DNA of 64,000 bases, from contig OZ059898.1 of assembly GCA_964057225.1 (NCBI GenBank), positions 11,098,001 to 11,162,000 on the forward strand, in the 5' to 3' direction. This DNA comes from Auanema rhodensis. Taxonomy: Eukaryota > Animalia > Nematoda. Positions 18,260 through 39,500 of this stretch are shown piece by piece. The stretch's first letter is position 1. Every line of letters starts with the position of its first letter. A program made the translations under genes and the position numbers. The notes under the pieces were generated by a model, which searched no databases, was not told the DNA's origin, and saw nothing but the letters and a program-made list of their open reading frames with translations.

Positions 18260-19640
18260 ATGTATTTTCATGATGGTAACATCAAGGTTTATACTATATC
18301 TTCAGTTTTAGTATCTTTCTTGGCTATATTAATCATTATTATTAATATACCATTTTTACAAATTGAAATAGCTAATTGCTTGATAACTTTATCAGATGAT
18401 ATATCTGAGTTTGATGTAAGATTATTAATTTCCTTTCTGGGCTTGTTATAAAATTTTTAGATGACCATTGGGACCGCATGGGATATCTTAATCACTATAG
18501 AAGAACAAAATAGATATCGTCGTGATCTTTATACTTATGAATTCAAGCCAATTATTAAAGCTCATAAACCAAAGCAAAGTGATTAAATATATTTTTAAAA
18601 TTTTAATTATCATTTTTTAAATAGAGATTGCAAGACCGCGTGTACATGGAACACACACTGTGATTTCTCAAGCTGGGAGACAATTATTTGGGGATGCAGA
18701 TGAAATAGAGGCTGAATTACAAACTGGTACACAAAATTCTATAATTTTTTGCCAAACTGTTTAAAAGAATCATATAGAATGCAAATTAGTTTTCAATTCG
18801 AAATGCCCTAAAGGAACACAAGGACCACCTGGGTTACCTGGAACCGATGGAAGTTAGTATTTGTTGTTATTTAATGAGCTAACGAAGAGTTTATTATGTC
18901 AGCCGACGGTTTGGACGGAACATATGGTATACCAGGTATAGATGCACATGATATTTCGGAGCAATCGACGGAAAATGCTTGTATCAAGTGCCCTGTAGGC
19001 ATTCCTGGTCCACCAGGAGCAAAAGGACGTGTCGGCCCTGCTGGGCCACCTGGTTCGCTGTTCTATCTAAGATGTTTTCAAATAAGTTTATTATAGGAAA
19101 ACCTGGAATTGACGGAAGTTACAGTGAAAAGATTGGATTACCTGGTCTTCAAGGACCACCAGGACCAGATGGCAATATAGGAGAAGAAGGAATACCTGGC
19201 AGGCCTGGAAGATATGCTATTCATTGGATATCACCACCAGGAGAAAAGGGAGTACAAGGTGCACAATAACAATAGCTCTGATGTGTTTCAAATAATATAT
19301 GACATAGGTTTACGAGGACCTAGAGGTTTGCCTGGGAAGCCGGGTGAAGATGGCGAACAAGGAGTAGCCGGTGTTCGCGGAAAGACCGGCAACAAAGGTT
19401 TGCCTGGCTTACCTGGACCAAAAGGTGTGGCCGGTAAACAGGGTAAAGTTGGAAAAAATGGTAAACTTACTCTATACTATATAAGGTTTATAAGATTCCA
19501 TTTAAGCTATAAAACGATTTTATTGCCCATGCCCTGAAAGGTCAAAAGAACATAACGTCACGAACATTTTACATTTTTCGGAAATAACTGAAAGCTCCAA
19601 CACAAAGCTACCTCCATATCCATCAGATGCCTATGAATAG
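18260..19640 (+). CDS. Nematode cuticle collagen
   Basis: N-terminal hydrophobic segment and Col_cuticle_N-like region, RYRR furin site, Gly-X-Y blocks, CIKCPVG and YCPCPER cysteine motifs. Confidence 0.93.
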
Positions 19641-19939
19641 ATAACAAATAGTTTTAAACTTGTTATATGTACATTCATATATATATTTAAGTGTCCGAAG
19701 ATAGTCAAGTTATACGTCATAAGTTTAAAAAATATTAAAATTATTTTCCAACTATTTTAGAGTTGGGCTTTTGTTGTAATAATAATCAGTAAATTGTATT
19801 TTACTATTCATAATTATGGTAACGTTTTTAACAATTTCAATAATTTATTATAATAACTTTAATAAACTTTAATTTAATAAAAATGAATAATATTTATATT
19901 TTACAGTTATATTCAAACATTAATCTATGAGTTAATAAA

Positions 19940-21238
19940 TTATTTATATTCGAAAAAAAACATAATAAAAGAACTAAAAGTTAAAAGAAATACAATAGTA
20001 TTAGATGAGGAACCATTTACACATTTATCTTTATCATATTTTGTTAATTTAATATCAAAATACTCTAAATGATGAGCATCTTTATAAGATTTTAATGTAT
20101 TAGAGCATAAAGTATCTTCATCTGATAAGGTACAAACCTAAAATAATTATATTATAATAGAAGAACTTAGTAGATGGATATAAGAAACATACCTTATATT
20201 CATATCCTTTTGTCATTCCATTTGTATACCAAACCTATAATTAATTTTCCATGCCATTATCAGTTTTAATGAATCATTTACCTCCGTCCCATGATGATGT
20301 GGAGCACTAGCCGAGAAATCATCACATTCATTAATCTTTCCTTTGTCTTCATCTAGTCTAATATATTTCTAATATATTTATGAAAAATGATTATGAAATA
20401 ATACCTGCATGGTGTCATATGTGGCACACTATCTAATTCATTAACAATTCTCCAAGAATCATGAATTACTCGATCTACATTGTTTGCTAAAGCCTTATTA
20501 CCAATACGTGGTTCACCGAATGTATATAGATGAATCTAATAATTATCGTAAAAAAAGTTCAATGAATATAATGTATCACCAAGTTTGTTGGAATTCCAAT
20601 TTTATAAGATTGTAACGCTGATAGGGTTGCCAATCCTGCACCTGTTGAATGACCAGTAAAAAGTATGTGATAGCCTGTGCTATTAGCAGAAGTTAACATT
20701 GCTGATATAGTTTTCCTGAAATAACAGGGGATGAAAAGTGAACTTCAAAATTTGAACAATGTACCAAATTTCCGAATGAGCCCGGAGAAATGTCATATCC
20801 ACAAGGCCAAAGCCAAGAAATTCAGTTGTTGCTCGGATACCTTTGATGAAATCTTTGTCGATTTTATCGATTCTATTAGGTCCTTTGATTGCAATTGTAA
20901 TTATCTTTTCATAATCATTAGCTACGGCCAAAACTCTACATGCTGGTTTTTCTCTTGCGCAATCTGATTCCTTAAAAAAATACATAAAATAATTTGCTTT
21001 TGAGATAGAAATTACACTATCAACCAAGATTCGATAATCAACGGAAAGTGGCGAACGTTCAAAACAACTGCTGGCCTCAGAAGAATATGCAGATGAAGCT
21101 ACAATAAAGGCTTTCCTACCAAACTGCAATAAGGATTTAGATGAAAAAACAAAAGAATTCAACTACATTTTCATTATATTCTAGAAAATCAGCAGAAATC
21201 AGATGAATAATTGTGAATAATATAATATATTTGAACAT
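19940..21238 (-). CDS. Secreted lipase class 3 (fungal-lipase-like alpha/beta hydrolase)
   Basis: Signal peptide MFKYIILFTIIHLISA; ILFTGHSTGAGLA (GxSxG); YTFGEPRIGN; RIVNELDSVPHMTPC; HHLEYF; hydrophobic C-terminus. Confidence 0.88.
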
Positions 21239-21548
21239 AGTCTTATCTAGCCATATACAACACGATAAGAAACTGTCAACTATATATATATATATATACT
21301 CCCACAAACATTTGTATGTGGGAGTATAGATAAAACACTTAATTCATAAGGTTTATTTTGAATTCTAAATATTTAATAAAAATATTTTGCGATTATCAGA
21401 TTCAAAATATGAATCGCACTATTTTTGCCGTAAACGTTATCAGTCTGTCTAATCTATGTATGTCTCAGAACAACGAACGAAACTATGAATCATTTCATGA
21501 CATAAATACTGAACGTGCTATATGGAACAGATAGGAACATGAACAACC

Positions 21549-21849
21549 ACTGGGCGTCGTGGCGGGCGTCTGTGAGCCAGTTTCTAGGCAGTAGATGATT
21601 GTGGATGAAGTGAGGTCAGGAGTCCTGGTTGAGTCGTGCATTACGGCGACCGGGCGTCCGAGCCAAGCGACGCGTCACTAGGGTCGGACTTTCGAAGGAA
21701 AGATCGACCCGGGTGGACAAGGAGAGGTGAATGGCTGAGGCCCGAAAGGGAGCAAGCAGAAGCCTCCGCGCGTTGTAGTGGCCGGATAGCGCCCGTGAGT
21801 TCTGACAACTCACCAGCCTGGTCGATACCTCCAGACCAATCATTGTTTT
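21549..21849 (+). ncRNA. srpr: Metazoan SRP RNA (7SL), copy 1
   Basis: ~300 nt; Alu 5' end ACTGGGCGTCGTGGCGGGCGTCTGTGA with UGUNR; helix 6 GGGTCG..CTTTC-GAAG-GAAAG..CGACCC (GNAR loop); helix 8 GAGG-CCC-GAAA-GGG-AGCA (SRP54 site); ATGATTG pairs with 3' CAATCAT; oligo-T terminator; strongly resembles C. elegans srpr as recalled. Confidence 0.95.
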
Positions 21850-21857
21850 GATTTTTT
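21846..21857 (+). terminator. Pol III terminator (T4 then T6), repeated in every unit
   Basis: TTTTGATTTTTT immediately after the 3' end of the SRP RNA. Confidence 0.85.
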
Positions 21858-21909
21858 CCGTCAAATATGACTAAACGGTCAAATAGACAGGATTGAAACA
21901 CAGATAATC

Positions 21910-22210
21910 ACTGGGCGTCGTGGCGGGCGTCTGTGAGCCAGTTTCTAGGCAGTAGATGATTGTGGATGAAGTGAGGTCAGGAGTCCTGGTTGAGTCGTGC
22001 ATTACGGCGACCGGGCGTCCGAGCCAAGCGACGCGTCACTAGGGTCGGACTTTCGAAGGAAAGATCGACCCGGGTGGACAAGGAGAGGTGAATGGCTGAG
22101 GCCCGAAAGGGAGCAAGCAGAAGCCTCCGCGCGTTGTAGTGGCCGGATAGCGCCCGTGAGTTCTGACAACTCACCAGCCTGGTCGATACCTCCAGACCAA
22201 TCATTGTTTT
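21910..22210 (+). ncRNA. srpr: SRP RNA copy 2
   Basis: Same sequence as copy 1. Confidence 0.93.
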
Positions 22211-22270
22211 GATTTTTTCCGTCAAATATGACTAAACGGTCAAATAGACAGGATTGAAACACAGATAATC

Positions 22271-22571
22271 ACTGGGCGTCGTGGCGGGCGTCTGTGAGCC
22301 AGTTTCTAGGCAGTAGATGATTGTGGATGAAGTGAGGTCAGGAGTCCTGGTTGAGTCGTGCATTACGGCGACCGGGCGTCCGAGCCAAGCGACGCGTCAC
22401 TAGGGTCGGACTTTCGAAGGAAAGATCGACCCGGGTGGACAAGGAGAGGTGAATGGCTGAGGCCCGAAAGGGAGCAAGCAGAAGCCTCCGCGCGTTGTAG
22501 TGGCCGGATAGCGCCCGTGAGTTCTGACAACTCACCAGCCTGGTCGATACCTCCAGACCAATCATTGTTTT
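22271..22571 (+). ncRNA. srpr: SRP RNA copy 3
   Basis: Same sequence as copy 1. Confidence 0.93.
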
Positions 22572-22631
22572 GATTTTTTCCGTCAAATATGACTAAACGG
22601 TCAAATAGACAGGATTGAAACACAGATAATC

Positions 22632-22932
22632 ACTGGGCGTCGTGGCGGGCGTCTGTGAGCCAGTTTCTAGGCAGTAGATGATTGTGGATGAAGTGAGGTC
22701 AGGAGTCCTGGTTGAGTCGTGCATTACGGCGACCGGGCGTCCGAGCCAAGCGACGCGTCACTAGGGTCGGACTTTCGAAGGAAAGATCGACCCGGGTGGA
22801 CAAGGAGAGGTGAATGGCTGAGGCCCGAAAGGGAGCAAGCAGAAGCCTCCGCGCGTTGTAGTGGCCGGATAGCGCCCGTGAGTTCTGACAACTCACCAGC
22901 CTGGTCGATACCTCCAGACCAATCATTGTTTT
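22632..22932 (+). ncRNA. srpr: SRP RNA copy 4
   Basis: Same sequence as copy 1. Confidence 0.93.
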
Positions 22933-22992
22933 GATTTTTTCCGTCAAATATGACTAAACGGTCAAATAGACAGGATTGAAACACAGATAATC

Positions 22993-23293
22993 ACTGGGCG
23001 TCGTGGCGGGCGTCTGTGAGCCAGTTTCTAGGCAGTAGATGATTGTGGATGAAGTGAGGTCAGGAGTCCTGGTTGAGTCGTGCATTACGGCGACCGGGCG
23101 TCCGAGCCAAGCGACGCGTCACTAGGGTCGGACTTTCGAAGGAAAGATCGACCCGGGTGGACAAGGAGAGGTGAATGGCTGAGGCCCGAAAGGGAGCAAG
23201 CAGAAGCCTCCGCGCGTTGTAGTGGCCGGATAGCGCCCGTGAGTTCTGACAACTCACCAGCCTGGTCGATACCTCCAGACCAATCATTGTTTT
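22993..23293 (+). ncRNA. srpr: SRP RNA copy 5
   Basis: Same sequence as copy 1. Confidence 0.93.
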
Positions 23294-23353
23294 GATTTTT
23301 TCCGTCAAATATGACTAAACGGTCAAATAGACAGGATTGAAACACAGATAATC

Positions 23354-23654
23354 ACTGGGCGTCGTGGCGGGCGTCTGTGAGCCAGTTTCTAGGCAGTAGA
23401 TGATTGTGGATGAAGTGAGGTCAGGAGTCCTGGTTGAGTCGTGCATTACGGCGACCGGGCGTCCGAGCCAAGCGACGCGTCACTAGGGTCGGACTTTCGA
23501 AGGAAAGATCGACCCGGGTGGACAAGGAGAGGTGAATGGCTGAGGCCCGAAAGGGAGCAAGCAGAAGCCTCCGCGCGTTGTAGTGGCCGGATAGCGCCCG
23601 TGAGTTCTGACAACTCACCAGCCTGGTCGATACCTCCAGACCAATCATTGTTTT
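23354..23654 (+). ncRNA. srpr: SRP RNA copy 6
   Basis: Same sequence as copy 1. Confidence 0.93.
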
Positions 23655-23714
23655 GATTTTTTCCGTCAAATATGACTAAACGGTCAAATAGACAGGATTG
23701 AAACACAGATAATC

Positions 23715-24015
23715 ACTGGGCGTCGTGGCGGGCGTCTGTGAGCCAGTTTCTAGGCAGTAGATGATTGTGGATGAAGTGAGGTCAGGAGTCCTGGTTGAGT
23801 CGTGCATTACGGCGACCGGGCGTCCGAGCCAAGCGACGCGTCACTAGGGTCGGACTTTCGAAGGAAAGATCGACCCGGGTGGACAAGGAGAGGTGAATGG
23901 CTGAGGCCCGAAAGGGAGCAAGCAGAAGCCTCCGCGCGTTGTAGTGGCCGGATAGCGCCCGTGAGTTCTGACAACTCACCAGCCTGGTCGATACCTCCAG
24001 ACCAATCATTGTTTT
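23715..24015 (+). ncRNA. srpr: SRP RNA copy 7
   Basis: Same sequence as copy 1. Confidence 0.93.
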
Positions 24016-24075
24016 GATTTTTTCCGTCAAATATGACTAAACGGTCAAATAGACAGGATTGAAACACAGATAATC

Positions 24076-24376
24076 ACTGGGCGTCGTGGCGGGCGTCTGT
24101 GAGCCAGTTTCTAGGCAGTAGATGATTGTGGATGAAGTGAGGTCAGGAGTCCTGGTTGAGTCGTGCATTACGGCGACCGGGCGTCCGAGCCAAGCGACGC
24201 GTCACTAGGGTCGGACTTTCGAAGGAAAGATCGACCCGGGTGGACAAGGAGAGGTGAATGGCTGAGGCCCGAAAGGGAGCAAGCAGAAGCCTCCGCGCGT
24301 TGTAGTGGCCGGATAGCGCCCGTGAGTTCTGACAACTCACCAGCCTGGTCGATACCTCCAGACCAATCATTGTTTT
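24076..24376 (+). ncRNA. srpr: SRP RNA copy 8
   Basis: Same sequence as copy 1. Confidence 0.93.
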
Positions 24377-24436
24377 GATTTTTTCCGTCAAATATGACTA
24401 AACGGTCAAATAGACAGGATTGAAACACAGATAATC

Positions 24437-24737
24437 ACTGGGCGTCGTGGCGGGCGTCTGTGAGCCAGTTTCTAGGCAGTAGATGATTGTGGATGAAGTG
24501 AGGTCAGGAGTCCTGGTTGAGTCGTGCATTACGGCGACCGGGCGTCCGAGCCAAGCGACGCGTCACTAGGGTCGGACTTTCGAAGGAAAGATCGACCCGG
24601 GTGGACAAGGAGAGGTGAATGGCTGAGGCCCGAAAGGGAGCAAGCAGAAGCCTCCGCGCGTTGTAGTGGCCGGATAGCGCCCGTGAGTTCTGACAACTCA
24701 CCAGCCTGGTCGATACCTCCAGACCAATCATTGTTTT
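24437..24737 (+). ncRNA. srpr: SRP RNA copy 9
   Basis: Same sequence as copy 1. Confidence 0.93.
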
Positions 24738-24797
24738 GATTTTTTCCGTCAAATATGACTAAACGGTCAAATAGACAGGATTGAAACACAGATAATC

Positions 24798-25098
24798 ACT
24801 GGGCGTCGTGGCGGGCGTCTGTGAGCCAGTTTCTAGGCAGTAGATGATTGTGGATGAAGTGAGGTCAGGAGTCCTGGTTGAGTCGTGCATTACGGCGACC
24901 GGGCGTCCGAGCCAAGCGACGCGTCACTAGGGTCGGACTTTCGAAGGAAAGATCGACCCGTGTGGACAAGGAGAGGTGAATGGCTGAGGCCCGAAAGGGA
25001 GCAAGCAGAAGCCTCCGCGCGTTGTAGTGGCCGGATAGCGCCCGTGAGTTCTGACAACTCACCAGCCTGGTCGATACCTCCAGACCAATCATTGTTTT
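24798..25098 (+). ncRNA. srpr: SRP RNA copy 10
   Basis: As copy 1, with G>T at 24961. Confidence 0.93.
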
Positions 25099-25158
25099 GA
25101 TTTTTTCCGTCAAATATGACTAAACGGTCAAATAGACAGGATTGAAACACAGATAATC

Positions 25159-25459
25159 ACTGGGCGTCGTGGCGGGCGTCTGTGAGCCAGTTTCTAGGCA
25201 GTAGATGATTGTGGATGAAGTGAGGTCAGGAGTCCTGGTTGAGTCGTGCATTACGGCGACCGGGCGTCCGAGCCAAGCGACGCGTCACTAGGGTCGGACT
25301 TTCGAAGGAAAGATCGACCCGGGTGGACAAGGAGAGGTGAATGGCTGAGGCCCGAAAGGGAGCAAGCAGAAGCCTCCGCGCGTTGTAGTGGCCGGATAGC
25401 GCCCGTGAGTTCTGACAACTCACCAGCCTGGTCGATACCTCCAGACCAATCATTGTTTT
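25159..25459 (+). ncRNA. srpr: SRP RNA copy 11
   Basis: Same sequence as copy 1. Confidence 0.93.
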
Positions 25460-25519
25460 GATTTTTTCCGTCAAATATGACTAAACGGTCAAATAGACAG
25501 GATTGAAACACAGATAATC

Positions 25520-25820
25520 ACTGGGCGTCGTGGCGGGCGTCTGTGAGCCAGTTTCTAGGCAGTAGATGATTGTGGATGAAGTGAGGTCAGGAGTCCTGGT
25601 TGAGTCGTGCATTACGGCGACCGGGCGTCCGAGCCAAGCGACGCGTCACTAGGGTCGGACTTTCGAAGGAAAGATCGACCCGGGTGGACAAGGAGAGGTG
25701 AATGGCTGAGGCCCGAAAGGGAGCAAGCAGAAGCCTCCGCGCGTTGTAGTGGCCGGATAGCGCCCGTGAGTTCTGACAACTCACCAGCCTGGTCGATACC
25801 TCCAGACCAATCATTGTTTT
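25520..25820 (+). ncRNA. srpr: SRP RNA copy 12
   Basis: Same sequence as copy 1. Confidence 0.93.
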
Positions 25821-25880
25821 GATTTTTTCCGTCAAATATGACTAAACGGTCAAATAGACAGGATTGAAACACAGATAATC

Positions 25881-26181
25881 ACTGGGCGTCGTGGCGGGCG
25901 TCTGTGAGCCAGTTTCTAGGCAGTAGATGATTGTGGATGAAGTGAGGTCAGGAGTCCTGGTTGAGTCGTGCATTACGGCGACCGGGCGTCCGAGCCAAGC
26001 GACGCGTCACTAGGGTCGGACTTTCGAAGGAAAGATCGACCCGGGTGGACAAGGAGAGGTGAATGGCTGAGGCCCGAAAGGGAGCAAGCAGAAGCCTCCG
26101 CGCGTTGTAGTGGCCGGATAGCGCCCGTGAGTTCTGACAACTCACCAGCCTGGTCGATACCTCCAGACCAATCATTGTTTT
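25881..26181 (+). ncRNA. srpr: SRP RNA copy 13
   Basis: Same sequence as copy 1. Confidence 0.93.
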
Positions 26182-26241
26182 GATTTTTTCCGTCAAATAT
26201 GACTAAACGGTCAAATAGACAGGATTGAAACACAGATAATC

Positions 26242-26542
26242 ACTGGGCGTCGTGGCGGGCGTCTGTGAGCCAGTTTCTAGGCAGTAGATGATTGTGGATG
26301 AAGTGAGGTCAGGAGTCCTGGTTGAGTCGTGCATTACGGCGACCGGGCGTCCGAGCCAAGCGACGCGTCACTAGGGTCGGACTTTCGAAGGAAAGATCGA
26401 CCCGGGTGGACAAGGAGAGGTGAATGGCTGAGGCCCGAAAGGGAGCAAGCAGAAGCCTCCGCGCGTTGTAGTGGCCGGATAGCGCCCGTGAGTTCTGACA
26501 ACTCACCAGCCTGGTCGATACCTCTAGACCAATCATTGTTTT
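26242..26542 (+). ncRNA. srpr: SRP RNA copy 14
   Basis: As copy 1, with C>T at 26525. Confidence 0.93.
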
Positions 26543-26602
26543 GATTTTTTCCGTCAAATATGACTAAACGGTCAAATAGACAGGATTGAAACACAGATAA
26601 TC

Positions 26603-26903
26603 ACTGGGCGTCGTGGCGGGCGTCTGTGAGCCAGTTTCTAGGCAGTAGATGATTGTGGATGAAGTGAGGTCAGGAGTCCTGGTTGAGTCGTGCATTACGG
26701 CGACCGGGCGTCCGAGCCAAGCGACGCGTCACTAGGGTCGGACTTTCGAAGGAAAGATCGACCCGGGTGGACAAGGAGAGGTGAATGGCTGAGGCCCGAA
26801 AGGGAGCAAGCAGAAGCCTCCGCGCGTTGTAGTGGCCGGATAGCGCCCGTGAGTTCTGACAACTCACCAGCCTGGTCGATACCTCCAGACCAATCATTGT
26901 TTT
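26603..26903 (+). ncRNA. srpr: SRP RNA copy 15
   Basis: Same sequence as copy 1. Confidence 0.93.
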
Positions 26904-26963
26904 GATTTTTTCCGTCAAATATGACTAAACGGTCAAATAGACAGGATTGAAACACAGATAATC

Positions 26964-27264
26964 ACTGGGCGTCGTGGCGGGCGTCTGTGAGCCAGTTTCT
27001 AGGCAGTAGATGATTGTGGATGAAGTGAGGTCAGGAGTCCTGGTTGAGTCGTGCATTACGGCGACCGGGCGTCCGAGCCAAGCGACGCGTCACTAGGGTC
27101 GGACTTTCGAAGGAAAGATCGACCCGGGTGGACAAGGAGAGGTGAATGGCTGAGGCCCGAAAGGGAGCAAGCAGAAGCCTCCGCGCGTTGTAGTGGCCGG
27201 ATAGCGCCCGTGAGTTCTGACAACTCACCAGCCTGGTCGATACCTCCAGACCAATCATTGTTTT
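26964..27264 (+). ncRNA. srpr: SRP RNA copy 16
   Basis: As copy 1; 1-bp deletion in the downstream spacer (~27273). Confidence 0.93.
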
Positions 27265-27323
27265 GATTTTTTCGTCAAATATGACTAAACGGTCAAATAG
27301 ACAGGATTGAAACACAGATAATC

Positions 27324-27624
27324 ACTGGGCGTCGTGGCGGGCGTCTGTGAGCCAGTTTCTAGGCAGTAGATGATTGTGGATGAAGTGAGGTCAGGAGTCC
27401 TGGTTGAGTCGTGCATTACGGCGACCGGGCGTCCGAGCCAAGCGACGCGTCACTAGGGTCGGACTTTCGAAGGAAAGATCGACCCGGGTGGACAAGGAGA
27501 GGTGAATGGCTGAGGCCCGAAAGGGAGCAAGCAGAAGCCTCCGCGCGTTGTAGTGGCCGGATAGCGCCCGTGAGTTCTGACAACTCACCAGCCTGGTCGA
27601 TACCTCCAGACCAATCATTGTTTT
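27324..27624 (+). ncRNA. srpr: SRP RNA copy 17
   Basis: Same sequence as copy 1. Confidence 0.93.
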
Positions 27625-27684
27625 GATTTTTTCCGTCAAATATGACTAAACGGTCAAATAGACAGGATTGAAACACAGATAATC

Positions 27685-27985
27685 ACTGGGCGTCGTGGCG
27701 GGCGTCTGTGAGCCAGTTTCTAGGCAGTAGATGATTGTGGATGAAGTGAGGTCAGGAGTCCTGGTTGAGTCGTGCATTACGGCGACCGGGCGTCCGAGCC
27801 AAGCGACGCGTCACTAGGGTCGGACTTTCGAAGGAAAGATCGACCCGGGTGGACAAGGAGAGGTGAATGGCTGAGGCCCGAAAGGGAGCAAGCAGAAGCC
27901 TCCGCGCGTTGTAGTGGCCGGATAGCGCCCGTGAGTTCTGACAACTCACCAGCCTGGTCGATACCTCCAGACCAATCATTGTTTT
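27685..27985 (+). ncRNA. srpr: SRP RNA copy 18
   Basis: Same sequence as copy 1. Confidence 0.93.
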
Positions 27986-28045
27986 GATTTTTTCCGTCAA
28001 ATATGACTAAACGGTCAAATAGACAGGATTGAAACACAGATAATC

Positions 28046-28346
28046 ACTGGGCGTCGTGGCGGGCGTCTGTGAGCCAGTTTCTAGGCAGTAGATGATTGTG
28101 GATGAAGTGAGGTCAGGAGTCCTGGTTGAGTCGTGCATTACGGCGACCGGGCGTCCGAGCCAAGCGACGCGTCACTAGGGTCGGACTTTCGAAGGAAAGA
28201 TCGACCCGTGTGGACAAGGAGAGGTGAATGGCTGAGGCCCGAAAGGGAGCAAGCAGAAGCCTCCGCGCGTTGTAGTGGCCGGATAGCGCCCGTGAGTTCT
28301 GACAACTCACCAGCCTGGTCGATACCTCCAGACCAATCATTGTTTT
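28046..28346 (+). ncRNA. srpr: SRP RNA copy 19
   Basis: As copy 1, with G>T at 28209 (shared with copy 10). Confidence 0.93.
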
Positions 28347-28406
28347 GATTTTTTCCGTCAAATATGACTAAACGGTCAAATAGACAGGATTGAAACACAG
28401 ATAATC

Positions 28407-28707
28407 ACTGGGCGTCGTGGCGGGCGTCTGTGAGCCAGTTTCTAGGCAGTAGATGATTGTGGATGAAGTGAGGTCAGGAGTCCTGGTTGAGTCGTGCATT
28501 ACGGCGACCGGGCGTCCGAGCCAAGCGACGCGTCACTAGGGTCGGACTTTCGAAGGAAAGATCGACCCGGGTGGACAAGGAGAGGTGAATGGCTGAGGCC
28601 CGAAAGGGAGCAAGCAGAAGCCTCCGCGCGTTGTAGTGGCCGGATAGCGCCCGTGAGTTCTGACAACTCACCAGCCTGGTCGATACCTCCAGACCAATCA
28701 TTGTTTT
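28407..28707 (+). ncRNA. srpr: SRP RNA copy 20
   Basis: As copy 1; spacer G>A at 28735. Confidence 0.93.
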
Positions 28708-28767
28708 GATTTTTTCCGTCAAATATGACTAAACAGTCAAATAGACAGGATTGAAACACAGATAATC

Positions 28768-29068
28768 ACTGGGCGTCGTGGCGGGCGTCTGTGAGCCAGT
28801 TTCTAGGCAGTAGATGATTGTGGATGAAGTGAGGTCAGGAGTCCTGGTTGAGTCGTGCATTACGGCGACCGGGCGTCCGAGCCAAGCGACGCGTCACTAG
28901 GGTCGGACTTTCGAAGGAAAGATCGACCCGGGTGGACAAGGAGAGGTGAATGGCTGAGGCCCGAAAGGGAGCAAGCAGAAGCCTCCGCGCGTTGTAGTGG
29001 CCGGATAGCGCCCGTGAGTTCTGACAACTCACCAGCCTGGTCGATACCTCCAGACCAATCATTGTTTT
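28768..29068 (+). ncRNA. srpr: SRP RNA copy 21
   Basis: Same sequence as copy 1. Confidence 0.93.
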
Positions 29069-29128
29069 GATTTTTTCCGTCAAATATGACTAAACGGTCA
29101 AATAGACAGGATTGAAACACAGATAATC

Positions 29129-29429
29129 ACTGGGCGTCGTGGCGGGCGTCTGTGAGCCAGTTTCTAGGCAGTAGATGATTGTGGATGAAGTGAGGTCAGG
29201 AGTCCTGGTTGAGTCGTGCATTACGGCGACCGGGCGTCCGAGCCAAGCGACGCGTCACTAGGGTCGGACTTTCGAAGGAAAGATCGACCCGGGTGGACAA
29301 GGAGAGGTGAATGGCTGAGGCCCGAAAGGGAGCAAGCAGAAGCCTCCGCGCGTTGTAGTGGCCGGATAGCGCCCGTGAGTTCTGACAACTCACCAGCCTG
29401 GTCGATACCTCCAGACCAATCATTGTTTT
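29129..29429 (+). ncRNA. srpr: SRP RNA copy 22
   Basis: Same sequence as copy 1. Confidence 0.93.
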
Positions 29430-29489
29430 GATTTTTTCCGTCAAATATGACTAAACGGTCAAATAGACAGGATTGAAACACAGATAATC

Positions 29490-29790
29490 ACTGGGCGTCG
29501 TGGCGGGCGTCTGTGAGCCAGTTTCTAGGCAGTAGATGATTGTGGATGAAGTGAGGTCAGGAGTCCTGGTTGAGTCGTGCATTACGGCGACCGGGCGTCC
29601 GAGCCAAGCGACGCGTCACTAGGGTCGGACTTTCGAAGGAAAGATCGACCCGGGTGGACAAGGAGAGGTGAATGGCTGAGGCCCGAAAGGGAGCAAGCAG
29701 AAGCCTCCGCGCGTTGTAGTGGCCGGATAGCGCCCGTGAGTTCTGACAACTCACCAGCCTGGTCGATACCTCCAGACCAATCATTGTTTT
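29490..29790 (+). ncRNA. srpr: SRP RNA copy 23
   Basis: Same sequence as copy 1. Confidence 0.93.
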
Positions 29791-29850
29791 GATTTTTTCC
29801 GTCAAATATGACTAAACGGTCAAATAGACAGGATTGAAACACAGATAATC

Positions 29851-30151
29851 ACTGGGCGTCGTGGCGGGCGTCTGTGAGCCAGTTTCTAGGCAGTAGATGA
29901 TTGTGGATGAAGTGAGGTCAGGAGTCCTGGTTGAGTCGTGCATTACGGCGACCGGGCGTCCGAGCCAAGCGACGCGTCACTAGGGTCGGACTTTCGAAGG
30001 AAAGATCGACCCGGGTGGACAAGGAGAGGTGAATGGCTGAGGCCCGAAAGGGAGCAAGCAGAAGCCTCCGCGCGTTGTAGTGGCCGGATAGCGCCCGTGA
30101 GTTCTGACAACTCACCAGCCTGGTCGATACCTCTAGACCAATCATTGTTTT
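29851..30151 (+). ncRNA. srpr: SRP RNA copy 24
   Basis: As copy 1, with C>T at 30134 (shared with copy 14). Confidence 0.93.
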
Positions 30152-30211
30152 GATTTTTTCCGTCAAATATGACTAAACGGTCAAATAGACAGGATTGAAA
30201 CACAGATAATC

Positions 30212-30512
30212 ACTGGGCGTCGTGGCGGGCGTCTGTGAGCCAGTTTCTAGGCAGTAGATGATTGTGGATGAAGTGAGGTCAGGAGTCCTGGTTGAGTCGT
30301 GCATTACGGCGACCGGGCGTCCGAGCCAAGCGACGCGTCACTAGGGTCGGACTTTCGAAGGAAAGATCGACCCGGGTGGACAAGGAGAGGTGAATGGCTG
30401 AGGCCCGAAAGGGAGCAAGCAGAAGCCTCCGCGCGTTGTAGTGGCCGGATAGCGCCCGTGAGTTCTGACAACTCACCAGCCTGGTCGATACCTCCAGACC
30501 AATCATTGTTTT
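30212..30512 (+). ncRNA. srpr: SRP RNA copy 25
   Basis: As copy 1; spacer G>A at 30540 (shared with copy 20). Confidence 0.93.
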
Positions 30513-30572
30513 GATTTTTTCCGTCAAATATGACTAAACAGTCAAATAGACAGGATTGAAACACAGATAATC

Positions 30573-30873
30573 ACTGGGCGTCGTGGCGGGCGTCTGTGAG
30601 CCAGTTTCTAGGCAGTAGATGATTGTGGATGAAGTGAGGTCAGGAGTCCTGGTTGAGTCGTGCATTACGGCGACCGGGCGTCCGAGCCAAGCGACGCGTC
30701 ACTAGGGTCGGACTTTCGAAGGAAAGATCGACCCGGGTGGACAAGGAGAGGTGAATGGCTGAGGCCCGAAAGGGAGCAAGCAGAAGCCTCCGCGCGTTGT
30801 AGTGGCCGGATAGCGCCCGTGAGTTCTGACAACTCACCAGCCTGGTCGATACCTCCAGACCAATCATTGTTTT
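30573..30873 (+). ncRNA. srpr: SRP RNA copy 26
   Basis: Same sequence as copy 1. Confidence 0.93.
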
Positions 30874-30933
30874 GATTTTTTCCGTCAAATATGACTAAAC
30901 GGTCAAATAGACAGGATTGAAACACAGATAATC

Positions 30934-31234
30934 ACTGGGCGTCGTGGCGGGCGTCTGTGAGCCAGTTTCTAGGCAGTAGATGATTGTGGATGAAGTGAGG
31001 TCAGAAGTCCTGGTTGAGTCGTGCATTACGGCGACCGGGCGTCCGAGCCAAGCGACGCGTCACTAGGGTCGGACTTTCGAAGGAAAGATCGACCCGGGTG
31101 GACAAGGAGAGGTGAATGGCTGAGGCCCGAAAGGGAGCAAGCAGAAGCCTCCGCGCGTTGTAGTGGCCGGATAGCGCCCGTGAGTTCTGACAACTCACCA
31201 GCCTGGTCGATACCTCCAGACCAATCATTGTTTT
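30934..31234 (+). ncRNA. srpr: SRP RNA copy 27
   Basis: As copy 1, with G>A at 31005. Confidence 0.93.
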
Positions 31235-31294
31235 GATTTTTTCCGTCAAATATGACTAAACGGTCAAATAGACAGGATTGAAACACAGATAATC

Positions 31295-31595
31295 ACTGGG
31301 CGTCGTGGCGGGCGTCTGTGAGCCAGTTTCTAGGCAGTAGATGATTGTGGATGAAGTGAGGTCAGGAGTCCTGGTTGAGTCGTGCATTACGGCGACCGGG
31401 CGTCCGAGCCAAGCGACGCGTCACTAGGGTCGGACTTTCGAAGGAAAGATCGACCCGGGTGGACAAGGAGAGGTGAATGGCTGAGGCCCGAAAGGGAGCA
31501 AGCAGAAGCCTCCGCGCGTTGTAGTGGCCGGATAGCGCCCGTGAGTTCTGACAACTCACCAGCCTGGTCGATACCTCCAGACCAATCATTGTTTT
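31295..31595 (+). ncRNA. srpr: SRP RNA copy 28
   Basis: Same sequence as copy 1. Confidence 0.93.
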
Positions 31596-31655
31596 GATTT
31601 TTTCCGTCAAATATGACTAAACGGTCAAATAGACAGGATTGAAACACAGATAATC

Positions 31656-31956
31656 ACTGGGCGTCGTGGCGGGCGTCTGTGAGCCAGTTTCTAGGCAGTA
31701 GATGATTGTGGATGAAGTGAGGTCAGGAGTCCTGGTTGAGTCGTGCATTACGGCGACCGGGCGTCCGAGCCAAGCGACGCGTCACTAGGGTCGGACTTTC
31801 GAAGGAAAGATCGACCCGGGTGGACAAGGAGAGGTGAATGGCTGAGGCCCGAAAGGGAGCAAGCAGAAGCCTCCGCGCGTTGTAGTGGCCGGATAGCGCC
31901 CGTGAGTTCTGACAACTCACCAGCCTGGTCGATACCTCCAGACCAATCATTGTTTT
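31656..31956 (+). ncRNA. srpr: SRP RNA copy 29
   Basis: Same sequence as copy 1. Confidence 0.93.
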
Positions 31957-32016
31957 GATTTTTTCCGTCAAATATGACTAAACGGTCAAATAGACAGGAT
32001 TGAAACACAGATAATC

Positions 32017-32317
32017 ACTGGGCGTCGTGGCGGGCGTCTGTGAGCCAGTTTCTAGGCAGTAGATGATTGTGGATGAAGTGAGGTCAGGAGTCCTGGTTGA
32101 GTCGTGCATTACGGCGACCGGGCGTCCGAGCCAAGCGACGCGTCACTAGGGTCGGACTTTCGAAGGAAAGATCGACCCGGGTGGACAAGGAGAGGTGAAT
32201 GGCTGAGGCCCGAAAGGGAGCAAGCAGAAGCCTCCGCGCGTTGTAGTGGCCGGATAGCGCCCGTGAGTTCTGACAACTCACCAGCCTGGTCGATACCTCC
32301 AGACCAATCATTGTTTT
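32017..32317 (+). ncRNA. srpr: SRP RNA copy 30
   Basis: Same sequence as copy 1. Confidence 0.93.
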
Positions 32318-32377
32318 GATTTTTTCCGTCAAATATGACTAAACGGTCAAATAGACAGGATTGAAACACAGATAATC

Positions 32378-32678
32378 ACTGGGCGTCGTGGCGGGCGTCT
32401 GTGAGCCAGTTTCTAGGCAGTAGATGATTGTGGATGAAGTGAGGTCAGGAGTCCTGGTTGAGTCGTGCATTACGGCGACCGGGCGTCCGAGCCAAGCGAC
32501 GCGTCACTAGGGTCGGACTTTCGAAGGAAAGATCGACCCGGGTGGACAAGGAGAGGTGAATGGCTGAGGCCCGAAAGGGAGCAAGCAGAAGCCTCCGCGC
32601 GTTGTAGTGGCCGGATAGCGCCCGTGAGTTCTGACAACTCACCAGCCTGGTCGATACCTCCAGACCAATCATTGTTTT
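32378..32678 (+). ncRNA. srpr: SRP RNA copy 31
   Basis: Same sequence as copy 1. Confidence 0.93.
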
Positions 32679-32738
32679 GATTTTTTCCGTCAAATATGAC
32701 TAAACGGTCAAATAGACAGGATTGAAACACAGATAATC

Positions 32739-33039
32739 ACTGGGCGTCGTGGCGGGCGTCTGTGAGCCAGTTTCTAGGCAGTAGATGATTGTGGATGAAG
32801 TGAGGTCAGGAGTCCTGGTTGAGTCGTGCATTACGGCGACCGGGCGTCCGAGCCAAGCGACGCGTCACTAGGGTCGGACTTTCGAAGGAAAGATCGACCC
32901 GGGTGGACAAGGAGAGGTGAATGGCTGAGGCCCGAAAGGGAGCAAGCAGAAGCCTCCGCGCGTTGTAGTGGCCGGATAGCGCCCGTGAGTTCTGACAACT
33001 CACCAGCCTGGTCGATACCTCCAGACCAATCATTGTTTT
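32739..33039 (+). ncRNA. srpr: SRP RNA copy 32
   Basis: Same sequence as copy 1. Confidence 0.93.
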
Positions 33040-33099
33040 GATTTTTTCCGTCAAATATGACTAAACGGTCAAATAGACAGGATTGAAACACAGATAATC

Positions 33100-33400
33100 A
33101 CTGGGCGTCGTGGCGGGCGTCTGTGAGCCAGTTTCTAGGCAGTAGATGATTGTGGATGAAGTGAGGTCAGGAGTCCTGGTTGAGTCGTGCATTACGGCGA
33201 CCGGGCGTCCGAGCCAAGCGACGCGTCACTAGGGTCGGACTTTCGAAGGAAAGATCGACCCGGGTGGACAAGGAGAGGTGAATGGCTGAGGCCCGAAAGG
33301 GAGCAAGCAGAAGCCTCCGCGCGTTGTAGTGGCCGGATAGCGCCCGTGAGTTCTGACAACTCACCAGCCTGGTCGATACCTCCAGACCAATCATTGTTTT
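33100..33400 (+). ncRNA. srpr: SRP RNA copy 33 (last)
   Basis: Same sequence as copy 1; the spacer runs into unique sequence after 33451. Confidence 0.93.
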
Positions 33401-33535
33401 GATTTTTTCCGTCAAATATGACTAAACGGTCAAATAGACAGGATTGAAACATATTCAATGAGATAAATAGAAAAAACAAATTTATAATTGATTTATGTGT
33501 GATAATCTTATGCAAAACATGTGTAAATATAAATT

Positions 33536-36500
33536 TTAGAAAGAACTACAACAGGATGGACTTGATTTCTTAATATGTATTTCTCCAAGACGAACATTAC
33601 CATCTCTATTAAAGAATAAAGGTTCATAAGATCCATCATTTTCCGTTGATTGTATCTTGAATTAATATTTTAAATTACACTTGTTAGCTATTTCAACTTA
33701 CAACTTCTACTAATTTTTCAAAAGCTTCTTCAATGCCTTTACTTGTTTTTGCTGATGTTCTAAATGCTGCTAAGAAACCATTGTTTTTTTGTATTTCGAC
33801 CAGTTTTTCATCTGTCATATCATTAGTCATATCCGTCTATAAAAATATTTTTTTTAACTTTATTTGTTATGTGTTTACCTTATTTGCTAGTAAAATGGTT
33901 GGAATTGGTTTTCCATTTGATAATGTAACTTTCTGATCTAAATCGGTTTTCCATCGTAATGCTCCTTCAACAGTCTGTTCTCTATAATTAAGATTCAACA
34001 ACTATCTACTGGACTGATATTTACCTTGCAGAGTCCAATACAATAACAGCAGCATGAGCATCTTTATAGTACACTCTGGTCATAACACCATATCGATCTT
34101 GTCCTGAAAAAAATCATTCGGTAAACATCAGCTGTGAAGGAGTTTGAGAGTTTCACTAAGATATATTTAGTTTTGGTTCTGCAACGAAAACAAAAAAAAC
34201 AAATAAAGAGTATTTTGTTTAGAATTCAAGGATTTTCAGTTTTTCTTTTTGAATAATATGAAAGAGTTCCAGCTGTTCAAATGAATATCAGGAGTTCATT
34301 TACTATTATTTAAAATACTGCAGATCGAGTAAAGCTGGAATTAATTTTTCAAATTTTGAAACAACTTATATTTGTAATGTAAATATATTTGCAATCAGCA
34401 AATTTCTTGAGATGTCTTCAAATATATCAGAATTCATTTTTTAACTGTTGAGAGATTCTTTGGGATATTTGCTAATGACAATTTTACAAAAAAAATGAGG
34501 AAAATGATATTTGAACTTTCTCTCTTTCACTGTACTTCTTTATTTTCAGTTTTCAAACATTTTTTATTCTGATCTTTTTGAAATGAGAAAAGTTCAGTTA
34601 TATTTTTTTTTATTTTTTTTGTTCTCGAGTATAATGTGCTGACGAACATATGAGCACGCTCTGACTGTTGGAAATTTTGAGCATATTTATACTGAGTTCA
34701 AAAAATTAAAAAATCGTCTGAAAAAAAGAATCTAAGAGGTGGTCAGATAGAAGTCTAGAATATTAAACTAGAAAAAAGAAAATAAAAGATGAACGATAGA
34801 GTAAGTGATGTAACGAGAAAGAGGGGAAAAGAATGTGAGACGCCAAGCGACATAGACCAAGAAAAATGGAGACTGATGAGAGAGAATGACGATTCAGATG
34901 TCTCGCCTCGAAAACTAGAGCTATTCATTCATCGTGCAGACGGTGATTCTACAGTTAGCAACTTCAACATTTTGTTTCTTCGCTCTGTTCACTTTTCAAT
35001 CTGTAACTCAACCATCTTCATCTCTCTTCTCATAGTTTTTTTCGTCCATGCTCATTTCACGTTGTATGTTTGAAAGGCGGTGCTTGTCAAGCGGCGCATT
35101 CATTCAGAATGCGACTCATCTTCCGAATAGTCTCCGACCTCTTATCCTTGTCCGAAACCATTTTTTGCTCTCTATTTTCTCTTTATTCATATTTGGTATC
35201 TCCATTGAAAAACTTTTTTTTATCTCCATTGCAATACAAGCTATTCAATTTCATAAGTGTAGGTTATTCACATTAAAGATCTGAAGATTTAAACATTGTT
35301 TTTTCTTTGTCAAGTGAAACACATTTCAAATTTTCTTCCAATATAAAAATTTATATGAGAATTATTTGAAAATTAGGTTTTTAATACAAAAATATTAGCA
35401 ACCTTTATTCATTTTTCAAAATTTGATGTTTAAAAGACTAAAATTTTCACCTTTATGTTTTACTGAGAAAGGAAAAAAATAAATAATAGAGGAGAACATT
35501 GATCGTTGTGTATTTATCTTTGAACCAAACATTTTTTTTCATATTTGTTTGAAGTTTGCCATACGCCATCATCTTATGTGTCTCAATCTTGTAATCTTGC
35601 CATATAGCCTTCGGGCATACAAGATACCTCGGCTTCACATTCCGCAATCATAAGAATGACTTGTATTCCTGCTTTTCTTTTGCCGTAAAACCGGTCCCGT
35701 TGAACATTTTGCTGTCGACGATACCTTTATCAGTCGCATTCAGGTACATCATCATAACTCGCCACATCATCATACTCCTTATACCTCATTCATCAGATCC
35801 AGCCATCAACAGTTAATTTTTTCTCTTTTCTTTCAATATTACTCTAGCAGTAATTTATTTTTTTCACTTCTTATCATTTAACTTCAATCATTATCTTCTA
35901 TCACGTTGGTATTATAAGCAAGTATTATAATATTGTATAATACCCTTTGGTTTTTTTTCTTTATTTATCATATTTCACTCTCTCACTTTCATCTACCTGC
36001 GAGCTTAATCTCATTGTGCTTGTCGTAATGGCTGTCGTATTCTTCTGTTCTCGAAGAATTGGATCCTTCCGGTTGGTGTGACGACGGTTAGCAGAAGACG
36101 TAACGGTCGGCAGACGACAAGGAAGTATGGTATGCTAGAGTCTTGATGACGCGATCAAGCCTCATGTAAACAAGCAAAGAGAATGACTACGGAATGTAGT
36201 TCCGGTTTTTTCGTTTGTGAGCCACTTCCGACAGAAGTTCATATCATAATAATTTGATTAATCTCAAGATTTTATCTCGGACACTTAGCTCAATAATCCA
36301 TAGATGAGATGAATTCCACGATTCATTATCTTCATGATTCTACTGATCCACTGTCTTTTTTACTTTTGATTCAAATTTGTGTTTCTATGTTGCTCATTAT
36401 TCATCTCTCTCACTCCCATTCAGTATGCGTCTGATGGTTTGAACTATTCCAAACTATTTCACCAAAATTTCAAAATATTTTGTATTACGAACTCCGAAAA

Positions 36501-39500
36501 TCTTTTTTTCACTAAATCCTAAGTCACATCGTATTGTTCAATCTATTCTGTAGGTCTATTCAAGCTCCTTTTACACGTTTTCTTCGTTTATTTTTTCATT
36601 TTGAAAAACGATTCGATGTGCAAATGAATAAGACCAGAATTGCAAAAATTGTATTTTGACCCTGTCTTAGCATCATCTATCCGATCAACCTTTGAAGAAT
36701 TGAGCCATTGAATCGTTGCGAGTAGCGTTGTTCCCGTCTTATACGACAACAATGCTACTTGCAGGAATGAAGCAAAAATTCAGTAGATATCTTGCTACAT
36801 TTAATCCTATAAATGAGCTAAGATAAGATTTTTTTATGTGAAATAGATGACTAGATACTCTCATCCTTCATAAATTTATGAGATAAAACTAAGTGACCGT
36901 AACCAACATAAGCAAATAAGCAATTGGGGAGAGCCTTCAATCAAGCCAAAGTATATGTTTTCTTAATATCTGAATATGAAAAAATGGCTGTCAAACGACG
37001 ATTGAGCTTACAGGAAATAGCTTACAGAAATGAACTTTCATGAGAATATGCTTAATAGAAATCTTTGCTTTAAGCGTTTCACCTGTCAAACTTTCGTTTC
37101 AACTTGAACACGTTTGTTTGTTTTATAGATTGATATAAGCTAAATGGGCTTCGTCTTGAAGCTATGTCATATTGAAGCTTTCACTTATGAAATTTTCTTC
37201 AAAAAGTGATTTTCCAAGTGCACAGTGTTTCAGTTTTTAACATTTTTCATTTATCGTTTATTTTTTTCTCTTTTATCTGCTCGTTACCCATTATCATCTC
37301 CTCTTACCATACACACAACAAATGTACATCTTCTGTTGTGCCTCTGAGCAAATAGAAGCACTTTCCGGTTTAGGGGTTAATGCCATCTGACTGGTCATCT
37401 CAATCAAGGTTAGACTGTTAGATTTGTATTCTATTGTTACCGCCAAATAGTAATATTAGAGGACAAAATGTTCAATAGAATCAAGTATCTATCAGCTTTT
37501 TTTAACATAAACGATTTGCTATAATCCTACATAAAACTTGTGAATGTTCTGCCTACATACCTTCGGAGACAATGGTTTGCAAAATCATTGACTGAAATGT
37601 ATTGCCTTTTCCAATATTAAGTATAAATGTATACACATATCTAACTATATAAAGCCTGAATCTATTATTAACATTATTATTATATGATTTTTTAGTAAAA
37701 AGTAATAAAATAAGTTTATCGAATATCTACTTTTCATCTCATGATCATCGCCATCATCAAACATACAAGAACATTGCTTTTCTATTATCTACTCATATGT
37801 ATATTTAACATATTTGTATATATAAATGATATCTCGATTATATTATATAATATTTATAATATATAAATATATAGTATACATGGTTTTGCTACTTTCATTT
37901 TGCTCTTTAACTACATATGTATATATTTCGACTCATAATCCGATTAGTTATTTCAAATCGCCTACTGAATTTTCGAGGTCCATTCAGCATGAAGTATGAA
38001 ATGAAAAATAGTGTTACGAACACAAAATTCAACACTCTGTTCAAAACTTTGTTCTATTTTCATTTCAATAATTTACTTCTTTCAATCCTTTTACTTTGAT
38101 ACCATAAACCAAAAGTTTCGTTCAGTCTTGTTCAGGCGCTTGCTATTTTCCCTTGCCACTACTGGTCCTTCTGGTTCTTTCTCTTTCATCACCTCACTCT
38201 TTTCTTCTATCTCTCTCTTCCGCCTGTTTTACGTTTGTATTTTTTTTCGTAAAAAAAGGTGATCGGTTTCGTGAACAATGTTGAACCAACTTGATTTCGA
38301 ACTTCTATCATCGCTTTATGGAAATTTATGATTAGTCATGCAGCTATAGTTAATGAATTTCATTCAAATCTGTATATTTCAGGTAGTATTTATATTCTCT
38401 GAATTCTATTTTTTCGGAAAAGAAAAGAATATAAGAAGAACGAGCGGGAGTTAGTTCTATCAAAGTTGTAAAATGAGCGCACGCTCTGCATACGTATGTC
38501 AGATTCAGGTAGGTTCTTTTACAAACTTGAATCATATGAAGAATTGTACATTTCTCTATTTAAGGCATGTAATGCCGTTTTAATCTTTTGTGGCCTTGGT
38601 TCTGTAGGATTGGCTGGAAGTCAATTTTCGGATGTTAATCTTCATAACTTTCGAGATATTGACTTGAGATTATTAAATTGGGTTCACATCCTCACAGGAT
38701 CGATAGGTATGTCAATTTGGAGTAATGCAATCAAAATATTCCGTTTGTTGGTGACTGTAGCAATCAAATGAAAAAGAGAGGAAAAAAAATATTTCGCATT
38801 TACCTCTTTTATGAACTAATCAATTGCTCAGTTATGTCATGAGAAATGAGCCTGTTCTTAGACGTAAAGTCCGGAACTGTACGTGAGAGCTTGCTTGCTT
38901 GCTGATCTTCTCTCTTCATTCTGCCTTCTCTCCCATTCCACTTAGAATCTAGTCCAGTGTTTGTTAAGTCGGTTTTGTAAAGCCGGAGGAGAATAGACAG
39001 AATGAAAACTGAAAGACACGTTCCTGAGGCCAAAAAGTTATAGGGAAAGCTAGATCACATGAAATGACATCAAAATTAAAAACTTAGAACATGAAAAAGT
39101 ATTAGTTTGAACACTTTTATTACGTATGCAGGTATCTACTCCTTAATACGAAGTCATGGAAGTATTGTAACGAAAACATTATACTTTGTTTCACTGGTTA
39201 TCGGTATTGCAACTGGGGTCTTCTATGGTTTTACAACATATCGTGTAAGATGCCACTTTTAAACAGTTTGGTTTCAAAAAAATGTGTTTAGGTTGTTGAA
39301 GCACATAACCAACTCCGCCAAGTTCAACAAGCACCAGGCTTTCAGGTTAGCAAATCTTCAAGAGCCGAAGAGAACAAAATGTTTTACAGGCTACGTTTGG
39401 ACAGGAAGATCGAAACTATGCAGCACGTATTGTGTTATCAGCTATTATGATAGGTTTTTGAAAATAAAAAAGCAAAATTAAAAAAACATTATTAAACTTT

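Follow-up and report, generated by a model that had tools for sequence, protein, structure and literature searches.

The closest precedent for the locus described here is zebrafish, which carries 67 complete SRP RNA copies of a maternal type in three clusters, together with a solitary somatic gene (bioRxiv 10.1101/869651). Five putative SRP RNA genes are reported in C. elegans (PMC4180458). S. mansoni has 8–12 (eight probable and four possible), for which no tandem order is reported, and its SL RNA lies in a 595-nt repeat (PMC2770079). A sequence-only reading of the present DNA had held that SRP RNA genes are few in well-studied animals; this stands for C. elegans but is overstated for zebrafish and S. 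mansoni.

In the nematode Auanema rhodense (A. rhodensis in the assembly record), 23,689 ncRNA loci are recorded, 5S, tRNA and U2 genes form arrays, and 61% of the genome is eliminated repeat (bioRxiv 10.64898/2026.08.27.747507); the text of this preprint makes no mention of SRP RNA. We analyzed a stretch of 64,000 nucleotides of this genome (the window), which contains a long tandem array of SRP RNA genes. As in C. elegans, several metazoan-type SRP RNA genes are present, but A. rhodense has at least 33 in this array and, beyond it, another array and a single solitary gene; the genes of S. mansoni are also multicopy, though fewer. Zebrafish resembles A. rhodense in having dozens of complete clustered genes (on chromosome 11) and solitary genes of another type. 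However, the zebrafish copies are at least 91% alike and no strict head-to-tail unit is described, whereas those of A. rhodense are 99.9% alike and separated by a 63-bp spacer. Stage-specific use of SRP types has been demonstrated in zebrafish. Arrays of 5S rRNA, SL RNA, tRNA and snRNA genes share the head-to-tail order, homogeneity, terminator and short spacer of the SRP array. The 5S, tRNA and U2 arrays of A. rhodense are eliminated, unlike the SRP array, which lies in gene-dense DNA and is seemingly retained in the soma. In the open-access literature we found no description of nematode SRP RNA genes that form a homogenised head-to-tail array.

Structure of the array

Tandem Repeats Finder (TRF) detected a single array with a period of 361 bp, 33.0 copies and 99% matches (Table 1). 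The Rfam model Metazoa_SRP (RF00017) gave 33 full-length matches (model positions 1–299 of 299), all on the plus strand, with scores of 222.1–228.5 bits (gathering score 70, E around 1e-60). Each unit is therefore an intact SRP (7SL) RNA gene, and the covariance-model search bears out the 33 head-to-tail genes announced by the sequence-only reading, whose spacers of about 60 bp measure 63 bp. The Rfam alignment and folding show the two hairpins of the Alu domain with UGUGA (UGUNR), the helix-6 loop GAAG (GNAR), the helix-8 loop GAAA (GNRA) and the SRP54-binding internal loop AGG/AGCA, with standard pairs at 93 of the 119 model pairs and a folding z of −3.6. Oligo-T runs directly follow the gene (T4 at unit position 298–301 and T6 at 304–309).

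Table 1. Features of the array and its surroundings (window coordinates; variants are numbered by unit position).
Feature	Position	Strand	Remarks
Class 3 lipase gene	20007..21250	-	eight exons; starts with ATG at 21238 and points away from array, at a distance of 310 bp; spliced RNA contig
Upstream DNA of first copy	21498..21548	+	diverged spacer homolog; TATA-like hexamer near -30
Tandem array	21548..33451	+	33 units, each with SRP RNA gene and 63-bp spacer; unit length 361 bp, in one case 360
SRP RNA gene, unit 1 (type A)	21549..21846	+	298 nt, full RF00017 model, equal to majority copy
T4 then T6 runs	21846..21857	+	Pol III terminator-like, recurring in every unit; presumed function, from known Pol III termination
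Spacer beyond T runs	21858..21909	+	sole upstream DNA of next gene, no clear TATA box; uncovered in RNA run X10
Middle block with all variant units	24798..31294	+	from sequence comparison of units
Last unit	33100..33451	+	complete gene and 54 of 63 spacer bases; stops 9 bases short of next-gene position
glo-1 (Rab32/38-like GTPase), 3' exons	33536..34107	-	stop codon 84 bp from array end
Variant 164G>T			units 10, 19
Variant 284C>T			units 14, 24
Variant 329G>A			units 20, 25
Variant 72G>A			unit 27
One-base deletion at 310			unit 16

Homogeneity of the units

Divergence among the units is 0.13%, against 12–14% to the array type with a 370-bp unit, and 24 of the 32 full units have one and the same sequence. 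Altogether there are five variants in the array, three of them common to two non-adjacent units (5, 9 and 10 units apart); the chance of obtaining three such identical pairs as independent errors is around 1e-7. None of these minor variants was seen in the read-derived contigs, which drop rare variants. Two of the three in-gene variants break a base pair of the model, so that single copies are under weak selection.

In an ungapped comparison, the sequence preceding the first copy matches the spacer at 26 of 51 positions (shuffle p 0.004); of 7387 windows taken from the flanks, 0.03% scored equally well. The two have blocks in common around −45 to −25. The left edge has diverged by about 40–45% from the internal spacers, yet the gene that adjoins it has the majority sequence. 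Such a diverged relative of the spacer is a mark of long concerted evolution, and the proposal of a newly born satellite fits it poorly. Together, the near-identical units, the shared non-adjacent variants and the diverged left upstream sequence support a homogenised, concertedly evolving array, as had been suggested from the letters, in which a turnover mechanism presumably operates.

Genomic setting

A lipase gene and glo-1 flank the array, in agreement with the sequence-only reading; the lipase is of class 3 and both genes are on the minus strand. The lipase was assigned through an ortholog (P0001) with PF01764; both genes were searched by single open frames. In Auanema sp. JU1783 the matching glo-1–lipase gap (833 bp, without sequence gaps) holds no SRP gene or remnant. 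This comparison with a sister species, which had been proposed as a check, shows that the array locus is lineage-specific. The DNA up to 8 kb from glo-1 in Diploscapter pachys, C. briggsae and P. pacificus likewise yielded neither an SRP gene nor a trace of one, and an exact 21-base S-domain pattern, searched as such, had no match in metagenome contigs. One candidate (P0002/L002) was rejected as a bacterial chance match. X-linkage of the locus was also dropped: the flanks are too unevenly covered in run X2, and in P. pacificus the ortholog is on a record of 39.6 Mb, taken to be an autosome.

We consider that the locus is a working, homogenised Pol III array of SRP genes in a genome prone to amplification of small-RNA genes, with a probability of roughly 0.6. 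In this lineage an SRP gene would have arrived at a site flanked by glo-1 and the lipase gene and been duplicated in tandem; turnover would then have continued until the upstream sequence at the outer edge had drifted apart from the spacers inside the array. Each unit is a minimal gene, in which a 298-nt RNA is followed by an oligo-T terminator and then by some 50 bp acting as the upstream region of the following copy. Kept in body cells, the array would give part of the SRP RNA of the worm (the largest part in X10), and the second array and the solitary gene would supply the remainder. Most likely the number of copies owes more to a general tendency of this genome to amplify small-RNA genes than to any particular demand for SRP, with many weak copies in place of a few strong ones. 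On this reading SRP RNA genes can evolve in the manner of 5S or SL1 genes, and about 50 bp from a terminator to the next start can suffice as upstream DNA. The finding is less remarkable in view of the zebrafish precedent and of the many small-RNA genes that are arrayed in the A. rhodense genome.

Transcription of the array

Two further SRP types besides that of the array (type A) were found in the sequencing runs: type B forms the second array, of 370-bp units, and type C is solitary, at single-copy depth. The second array and the solitary gene lay outside the one window of the sequence-only reading, as did the amplification of many small-RNA genes in this genome. In the RNA run X10, an exact 246-nt contig of the type A gene body (21594–21839) was recovered, and no spacer or unit joint was present among the contigs. 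Depth in this run was 60.6 for type A, 29.9 for type C and 11.9 for type B; stage and library are unstated and the contigs give no RNA level, strand or ends. Spliced lipase mRNA is present in the same run. The array is apparently transcribed, though type A RNA is not traceable to a particular copy because the first copy has the majority sequence. A loose A-box-like match lies at +12 (one of five), and the B-box matches fall in structural helices. The TATA-like hexamer at −30 precedes the first copy only. Pol III probably transcribes the array; the count of active copies and their assembly into SRP are likewise things that we infer. Depth in this one run suggests a low output per array copy compared with the solitary gene; that the array was amplified for dosage is no more than a conjecture.

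These data bear on a different and rather unlikely reading, in which the array would be a gene-derived satellite. True transcription would be confined to the first copy with its TATA-like upstream DNA, and the other 32 copies, almost silent, would have been amplified by the drift that builds the satellites of this genome. The internal spacers without the hexamer, the type A depth of only about twice that of the solitary type C for an array of 33–45 copies, the still lower depth of the larger type B array, and the wealth of eliminated repeat and amplified ncRNA genes would all agree with it. However, 33 of 33 copies are intact and have terminators, the unit is trimmed exactly to the gene and a minimal spacer, and gene bodies are conserved between two separate arrays while spacers are not. 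Moreover, the spacer and the first-copy upstream DNA have blocks in common, and SRP genes carry internal promoter elements.

Distinct SRP RNA types

Genes of types A, B and C are 86–89% alike, with differences of 11–14% that fall in the Alu and S domains, and no alignment is obtained between their spacers. When the three types were compared for compensatory changes, two helix-6 pairs differed at both partners; the letters listed do not pair, perhaps because each place carries a single letter for more than one type, and many partners lay outside the coverage. The types can be separated by sequence, so that stage specificity outside fish, and copy number versus weak promoters, become addressable.

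It is quite doubtful, though conceivable, that the types are specialised, the arrays providing bulk SRP RNA for the germline, the egg or one sex and the solitary gene that of the soma. Such use of distinct types by stage, sex or germline and soma would amount to an independent zebrafish-like dual targeting system in a worm that is small and genetically tractable, on a similarly tentative footing. The layout of many clustered copies plus solitary genes is zebrafish-like, the three types are 11–14% apart where those of zebrafish differ by 7%, and their depth in X10 is unequal. Against this, type A is the commonest type in that RNA run, and the array is embedded among ordinary genes and seems to be retained in the soma, in a species that removes germline-only DNA. 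In run X9 the unit has a depth of 720.8–771 against 16.1 for the flank, a ratio of about 45 that, like all such unit-to-flank ratios, is rough and GC-biased. A germline-only array would be expected to give a ratio of about 4 (33 x 29/236, with coverage figures from bioRxiv 10.64898/2026.08.27.747507), so the low coverage of germline-restricted, eliminated arrays is not seen here, which argues that the array is kept in body cells. As for the break sites that bound eliminated arrays, no GGC/GCC dyad was found in the 64-kb window. A working, homogenised array kept in the soma remains the reading that we prefer.

The array in raw reads

The 361-bp unit-to-unit joint was found in read-derived contigs of three DNA runs (X2, X9 and X12), which disposes of the suggestion that raw reads might support 1–2 copies only. 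It is thus highly improbable that the assembly looped one or two genes into 33 copies, as might be feared from almost identical units, from minor variants not recovered in contigs and from runs X1–X8 being a possible source of the assembly. The joint occurs at high depth in X9 and X12, whose study is not marked as that source, the depth ratio is about 45, a flank contig continues into unit 1 without differences, and variants recur between units.

An origin as a cluster of 7SL-derived SINEs or retro-pseudogenes, repeats of this derivation being known in primates, rodents and hagfish (PMC13023118), is refuted by the match of every copy to the full-length model. S domains without internal (central) deletion, the absence of A-rich tails, the head-to-tail order with a unique common spacer and the lack of dispersed copies elsewhere in the window also speak against it. 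Neither a decayed SRP copy outside the array nor a tRNA gene was found in the 64 kb. The minus-strand ORFs of 82–86 aa that are repeated in each unit were set aside as by-products of its GC-rich sequence.

The array consists of complete SRP RNA genes

Tandem Repeats Finder reports a single array (period 361, 33.0 copies, 99% matches) with a GC content of 54% versus about 33% in the flanks. The sequence-only reading had proposed that each unit is an intact SRP (7SL) RNA gene, and the Rfam covariance model confirms this: we found 33 complete Metazoa_SRP genes, all spanning model positions 1-299, at 222.1-228.5 bits (gathering score 70). The motifs it had named were located as UGUGA in the Alu domain (UGUNR), GAAG in helix 6 (GNAR) and GAAA with an AGG/AGCA SRP54 loop in helix 8, and its oligo-T terminator as T4 and then T6 runs directly 3' of the gene; spacers are 63 bp long. 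Standard pairs occupy 93 of 119 model pairs, and the folding of the RNA beats 100 of 100 shuffles (z -3.6). The array is a lineage-specific set of intact SRP genes, and is apparently expressed.

Features of the window and of the JU1783 locus (L001)
Feature	Coordinates	Strand	Detail
SRP array	21548-33451	+	type A
Class 3 lipase gene	20007-21250	-
glo-1 3' exons	33536-34107	-	Rab32/38-like GTPase
X9 contig, flank into unit 1	from 20533		no differences
X10 contig, SRP gene body	21594-21839		exact match
X10 contig, type B unit	21545-21804
Further SRP-like contigs	21538-21804		X9, X12, X2
Start of lipase RNA contig	21250	-	X10
Conserved blocks	36102-36277; 37078-37137; 37343-37411		L001 7077-7262
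Degenerate short repeats	L001 9440-9650		three
Colinear with JU1783	20.3-44 kb
Variant 164G>T			units 10, 19
Variant 284C>T			units 14, 24
Variant 329G>A			units 20, 25

The array is found in sequencing runs and its gene body in RNA

Contigs of four runs were compared with window positions 19510-21909. The 361-base unit-to-unit joint is present in the three DNA runs X2, X9 and X12 (depth 1847, 721 and 136); X9 and X12 belong to a study that is not flagged as a candidate origin of the assembly. One X9 contig spans the unique lipase-side flank into unit 1 at depth 16.1, and the unit contigs of this run reach 720.8-771, a ratio of about 45 which, although contig depth is a rough, GC-biased measure, excludes 1-2 copies. 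Together with the joints, this argues for a real array over an assembly artefact.

According to a preprint (bioRxiv 10.64898/2026.08.27.747507), A. rhodense body cells lose 61% of the 181-Mb genome; the species has 23,689 ncRNA loci, and the eliminated part holds 5S, tRNA and U2 gene arrays; coverage is given as 29 versus 236, and SRP is not mentioned in its text. Elimination of 33 copies would give a unit/flank ratio of about 4 rather than 45, so somatic cells probably keep the array.

X10 is an RNA run, in which the lipase transcript has its seven introns removed. Contigs of this single run, from which strand, ends, level and copy of origin cannot be read, include an exact match to the SRP gene body at depth 60.6. 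Type A spacer and joint were not found in X10 contigs, which points to RNA and not to DNA carry-over.

Units are homogenised and the array edges differ

Among 32 full units 24 are identical, with a mean diversity of 0.13% across the array. Five variants in total are confined to units 10-27, and three of them recur in two units each (chance about 1e-7 if errors were independent), as block duplication by unequal exchange leaves. Three variants lie within the gene: two disrupt a model base pair, and the third produces a G-U. Minor unit variants were not recovered in run contigs, which lose rare variants.

At the right edge, 54 perfect spacer bases precede unique DNA, 9 bases before the place of the next gene. 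At the left edge, the first gene has the majority sequence and its upstream 51 bases match the spacer only distantly (26/51 without gaps; p 0.004 by shuffling; a score reached by 0.03% of flank windows). Had the array been amplified recently in one step, both edges should be identical to the spacer; the unequal edges suggest long turnover.

Other SRP types and the possible working of the array

Two further SRP types occur in the runs. Type B, 86-88% alike to type A, is tandem with a period of 370 bp (depth 2499, 931 and 106 in DNA runs; 11.9 in RNA, joint included). Type C, about 89% alike to type A and carried on a 7.9-kb contig in X2, has depth 16.2 in X9, equal to the flank, and is therefore a solitary gene; its RNA depth is 29.9. 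If RNA depths are meaningful, the signal of solitary type C is roughly half that of all type A copies together, which per copy would make it 15-20 times stronger; we treat this as a lead only. One X10 contig has a whole type B unit including the joint and lacks the type A spacer; the type B array may undergo read-through or overlapping transcription. SRP-like contigs that have different flanks also occur, some of them exclusively in runs labelled organism C; they probably derive from another organism in the samples, or else represent more SRP types.

We favour, at a probability of roughly 0.6, a working array whose size is set by the genome's general amplification of small-RNA genes. Each unit would be a minimal Pol III gene, as the RNA class and T runs suggest; unequal exchange and conversion would keep copies alike and alter copy number, and the array would contribute SRP RNA beside types B and C. 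That one first copy is active and the others are mostly silent passengers seems unlikely to us; in its favour, a TATA-like hexamer lies near -30 of the first copy and the spacers have none, and against it, all 33 genes are complete. Specialisation of SRP types by stage or germline is doubtful too, even with a precedent in zebrafish, where the egg and early embryo express three clusters with 67 complete SRP copies and adults use a solitary gene (bioRxiv 10.1101/869651). A. rhodensis similarly combines arrays with solitary type C. An artefact or a SINE is very improbable beside full model matches and joints in three DNA runs.

Well-studied animals had been said to hold few SRP copies. This stands for C. 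elegans, with five putative genes (PMC4180458), and fails for zebrafish, whose clusters mean that amplified, clustered SRP genes were already known; S. mansoni has eight to twelve (PMC2770079) and the tunicate D. vexillum one (PMC5006418). In open-access literature we found no description of a strict head-to-tail nematode SRP array, 99.9% homogenised, with a 63-bp spacer.

The locus in related nematodes

The flanking lipase has its best relative in Auanema sp. JU1783, whose lipase locus is colinear with the window. There the proposed sister-species comparison found 833 bp between glo-1 and lipase, free of assembly gaps, in which neither an SRP gene nor a remnant of one was found. In D. pachys, C. 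briggsae and P. pacificus, too, the sequence up to 8 kb from glo-1 holds no SRP gene, and gain in the A. rhodensis lineage is the simplest reading. A gap of 310 bp separates the array from the lipase ATG and one of 84 bp from the glo-1 stop codon; both genes lie on the opposite strand, and the lipase is still expressed beside the array (X10). The lipase RNA contig starts directly after a minus-strand AG, 12 bases ahead of the ATG, which fits a trans-splice acceptor. The short repeats in the JU1783 interval have no Rfam match.

Upstream of the glo-1 3' exons, blocks are conserved with JU1783 (82% across 188 bases, with long stretches of identity). Their indels of 11 and 1 base indicate that they are probably non-coding; they have no Rfam match and were not found in the Diploscapter, C. 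briggsae and P. pacificus loci. They may be an unannotated ncRNA or regulatory element. With spliced lipase and glo-1 models searched as single, unjoined frames, the glo-1 N-terminal exons (P-loop part) were not located within 34140-38400. Called glo-1 products (159-171 aa) in JU1783, C. briggsae and P. pacificus also seem to be without them. Gene calls place a separate Ras-type fragment about 8 kb upstream of glo-1 in JU1783 and in another relative's locus (L004), past an opposite-strand gene that could sit inside a long intron of glo-1.
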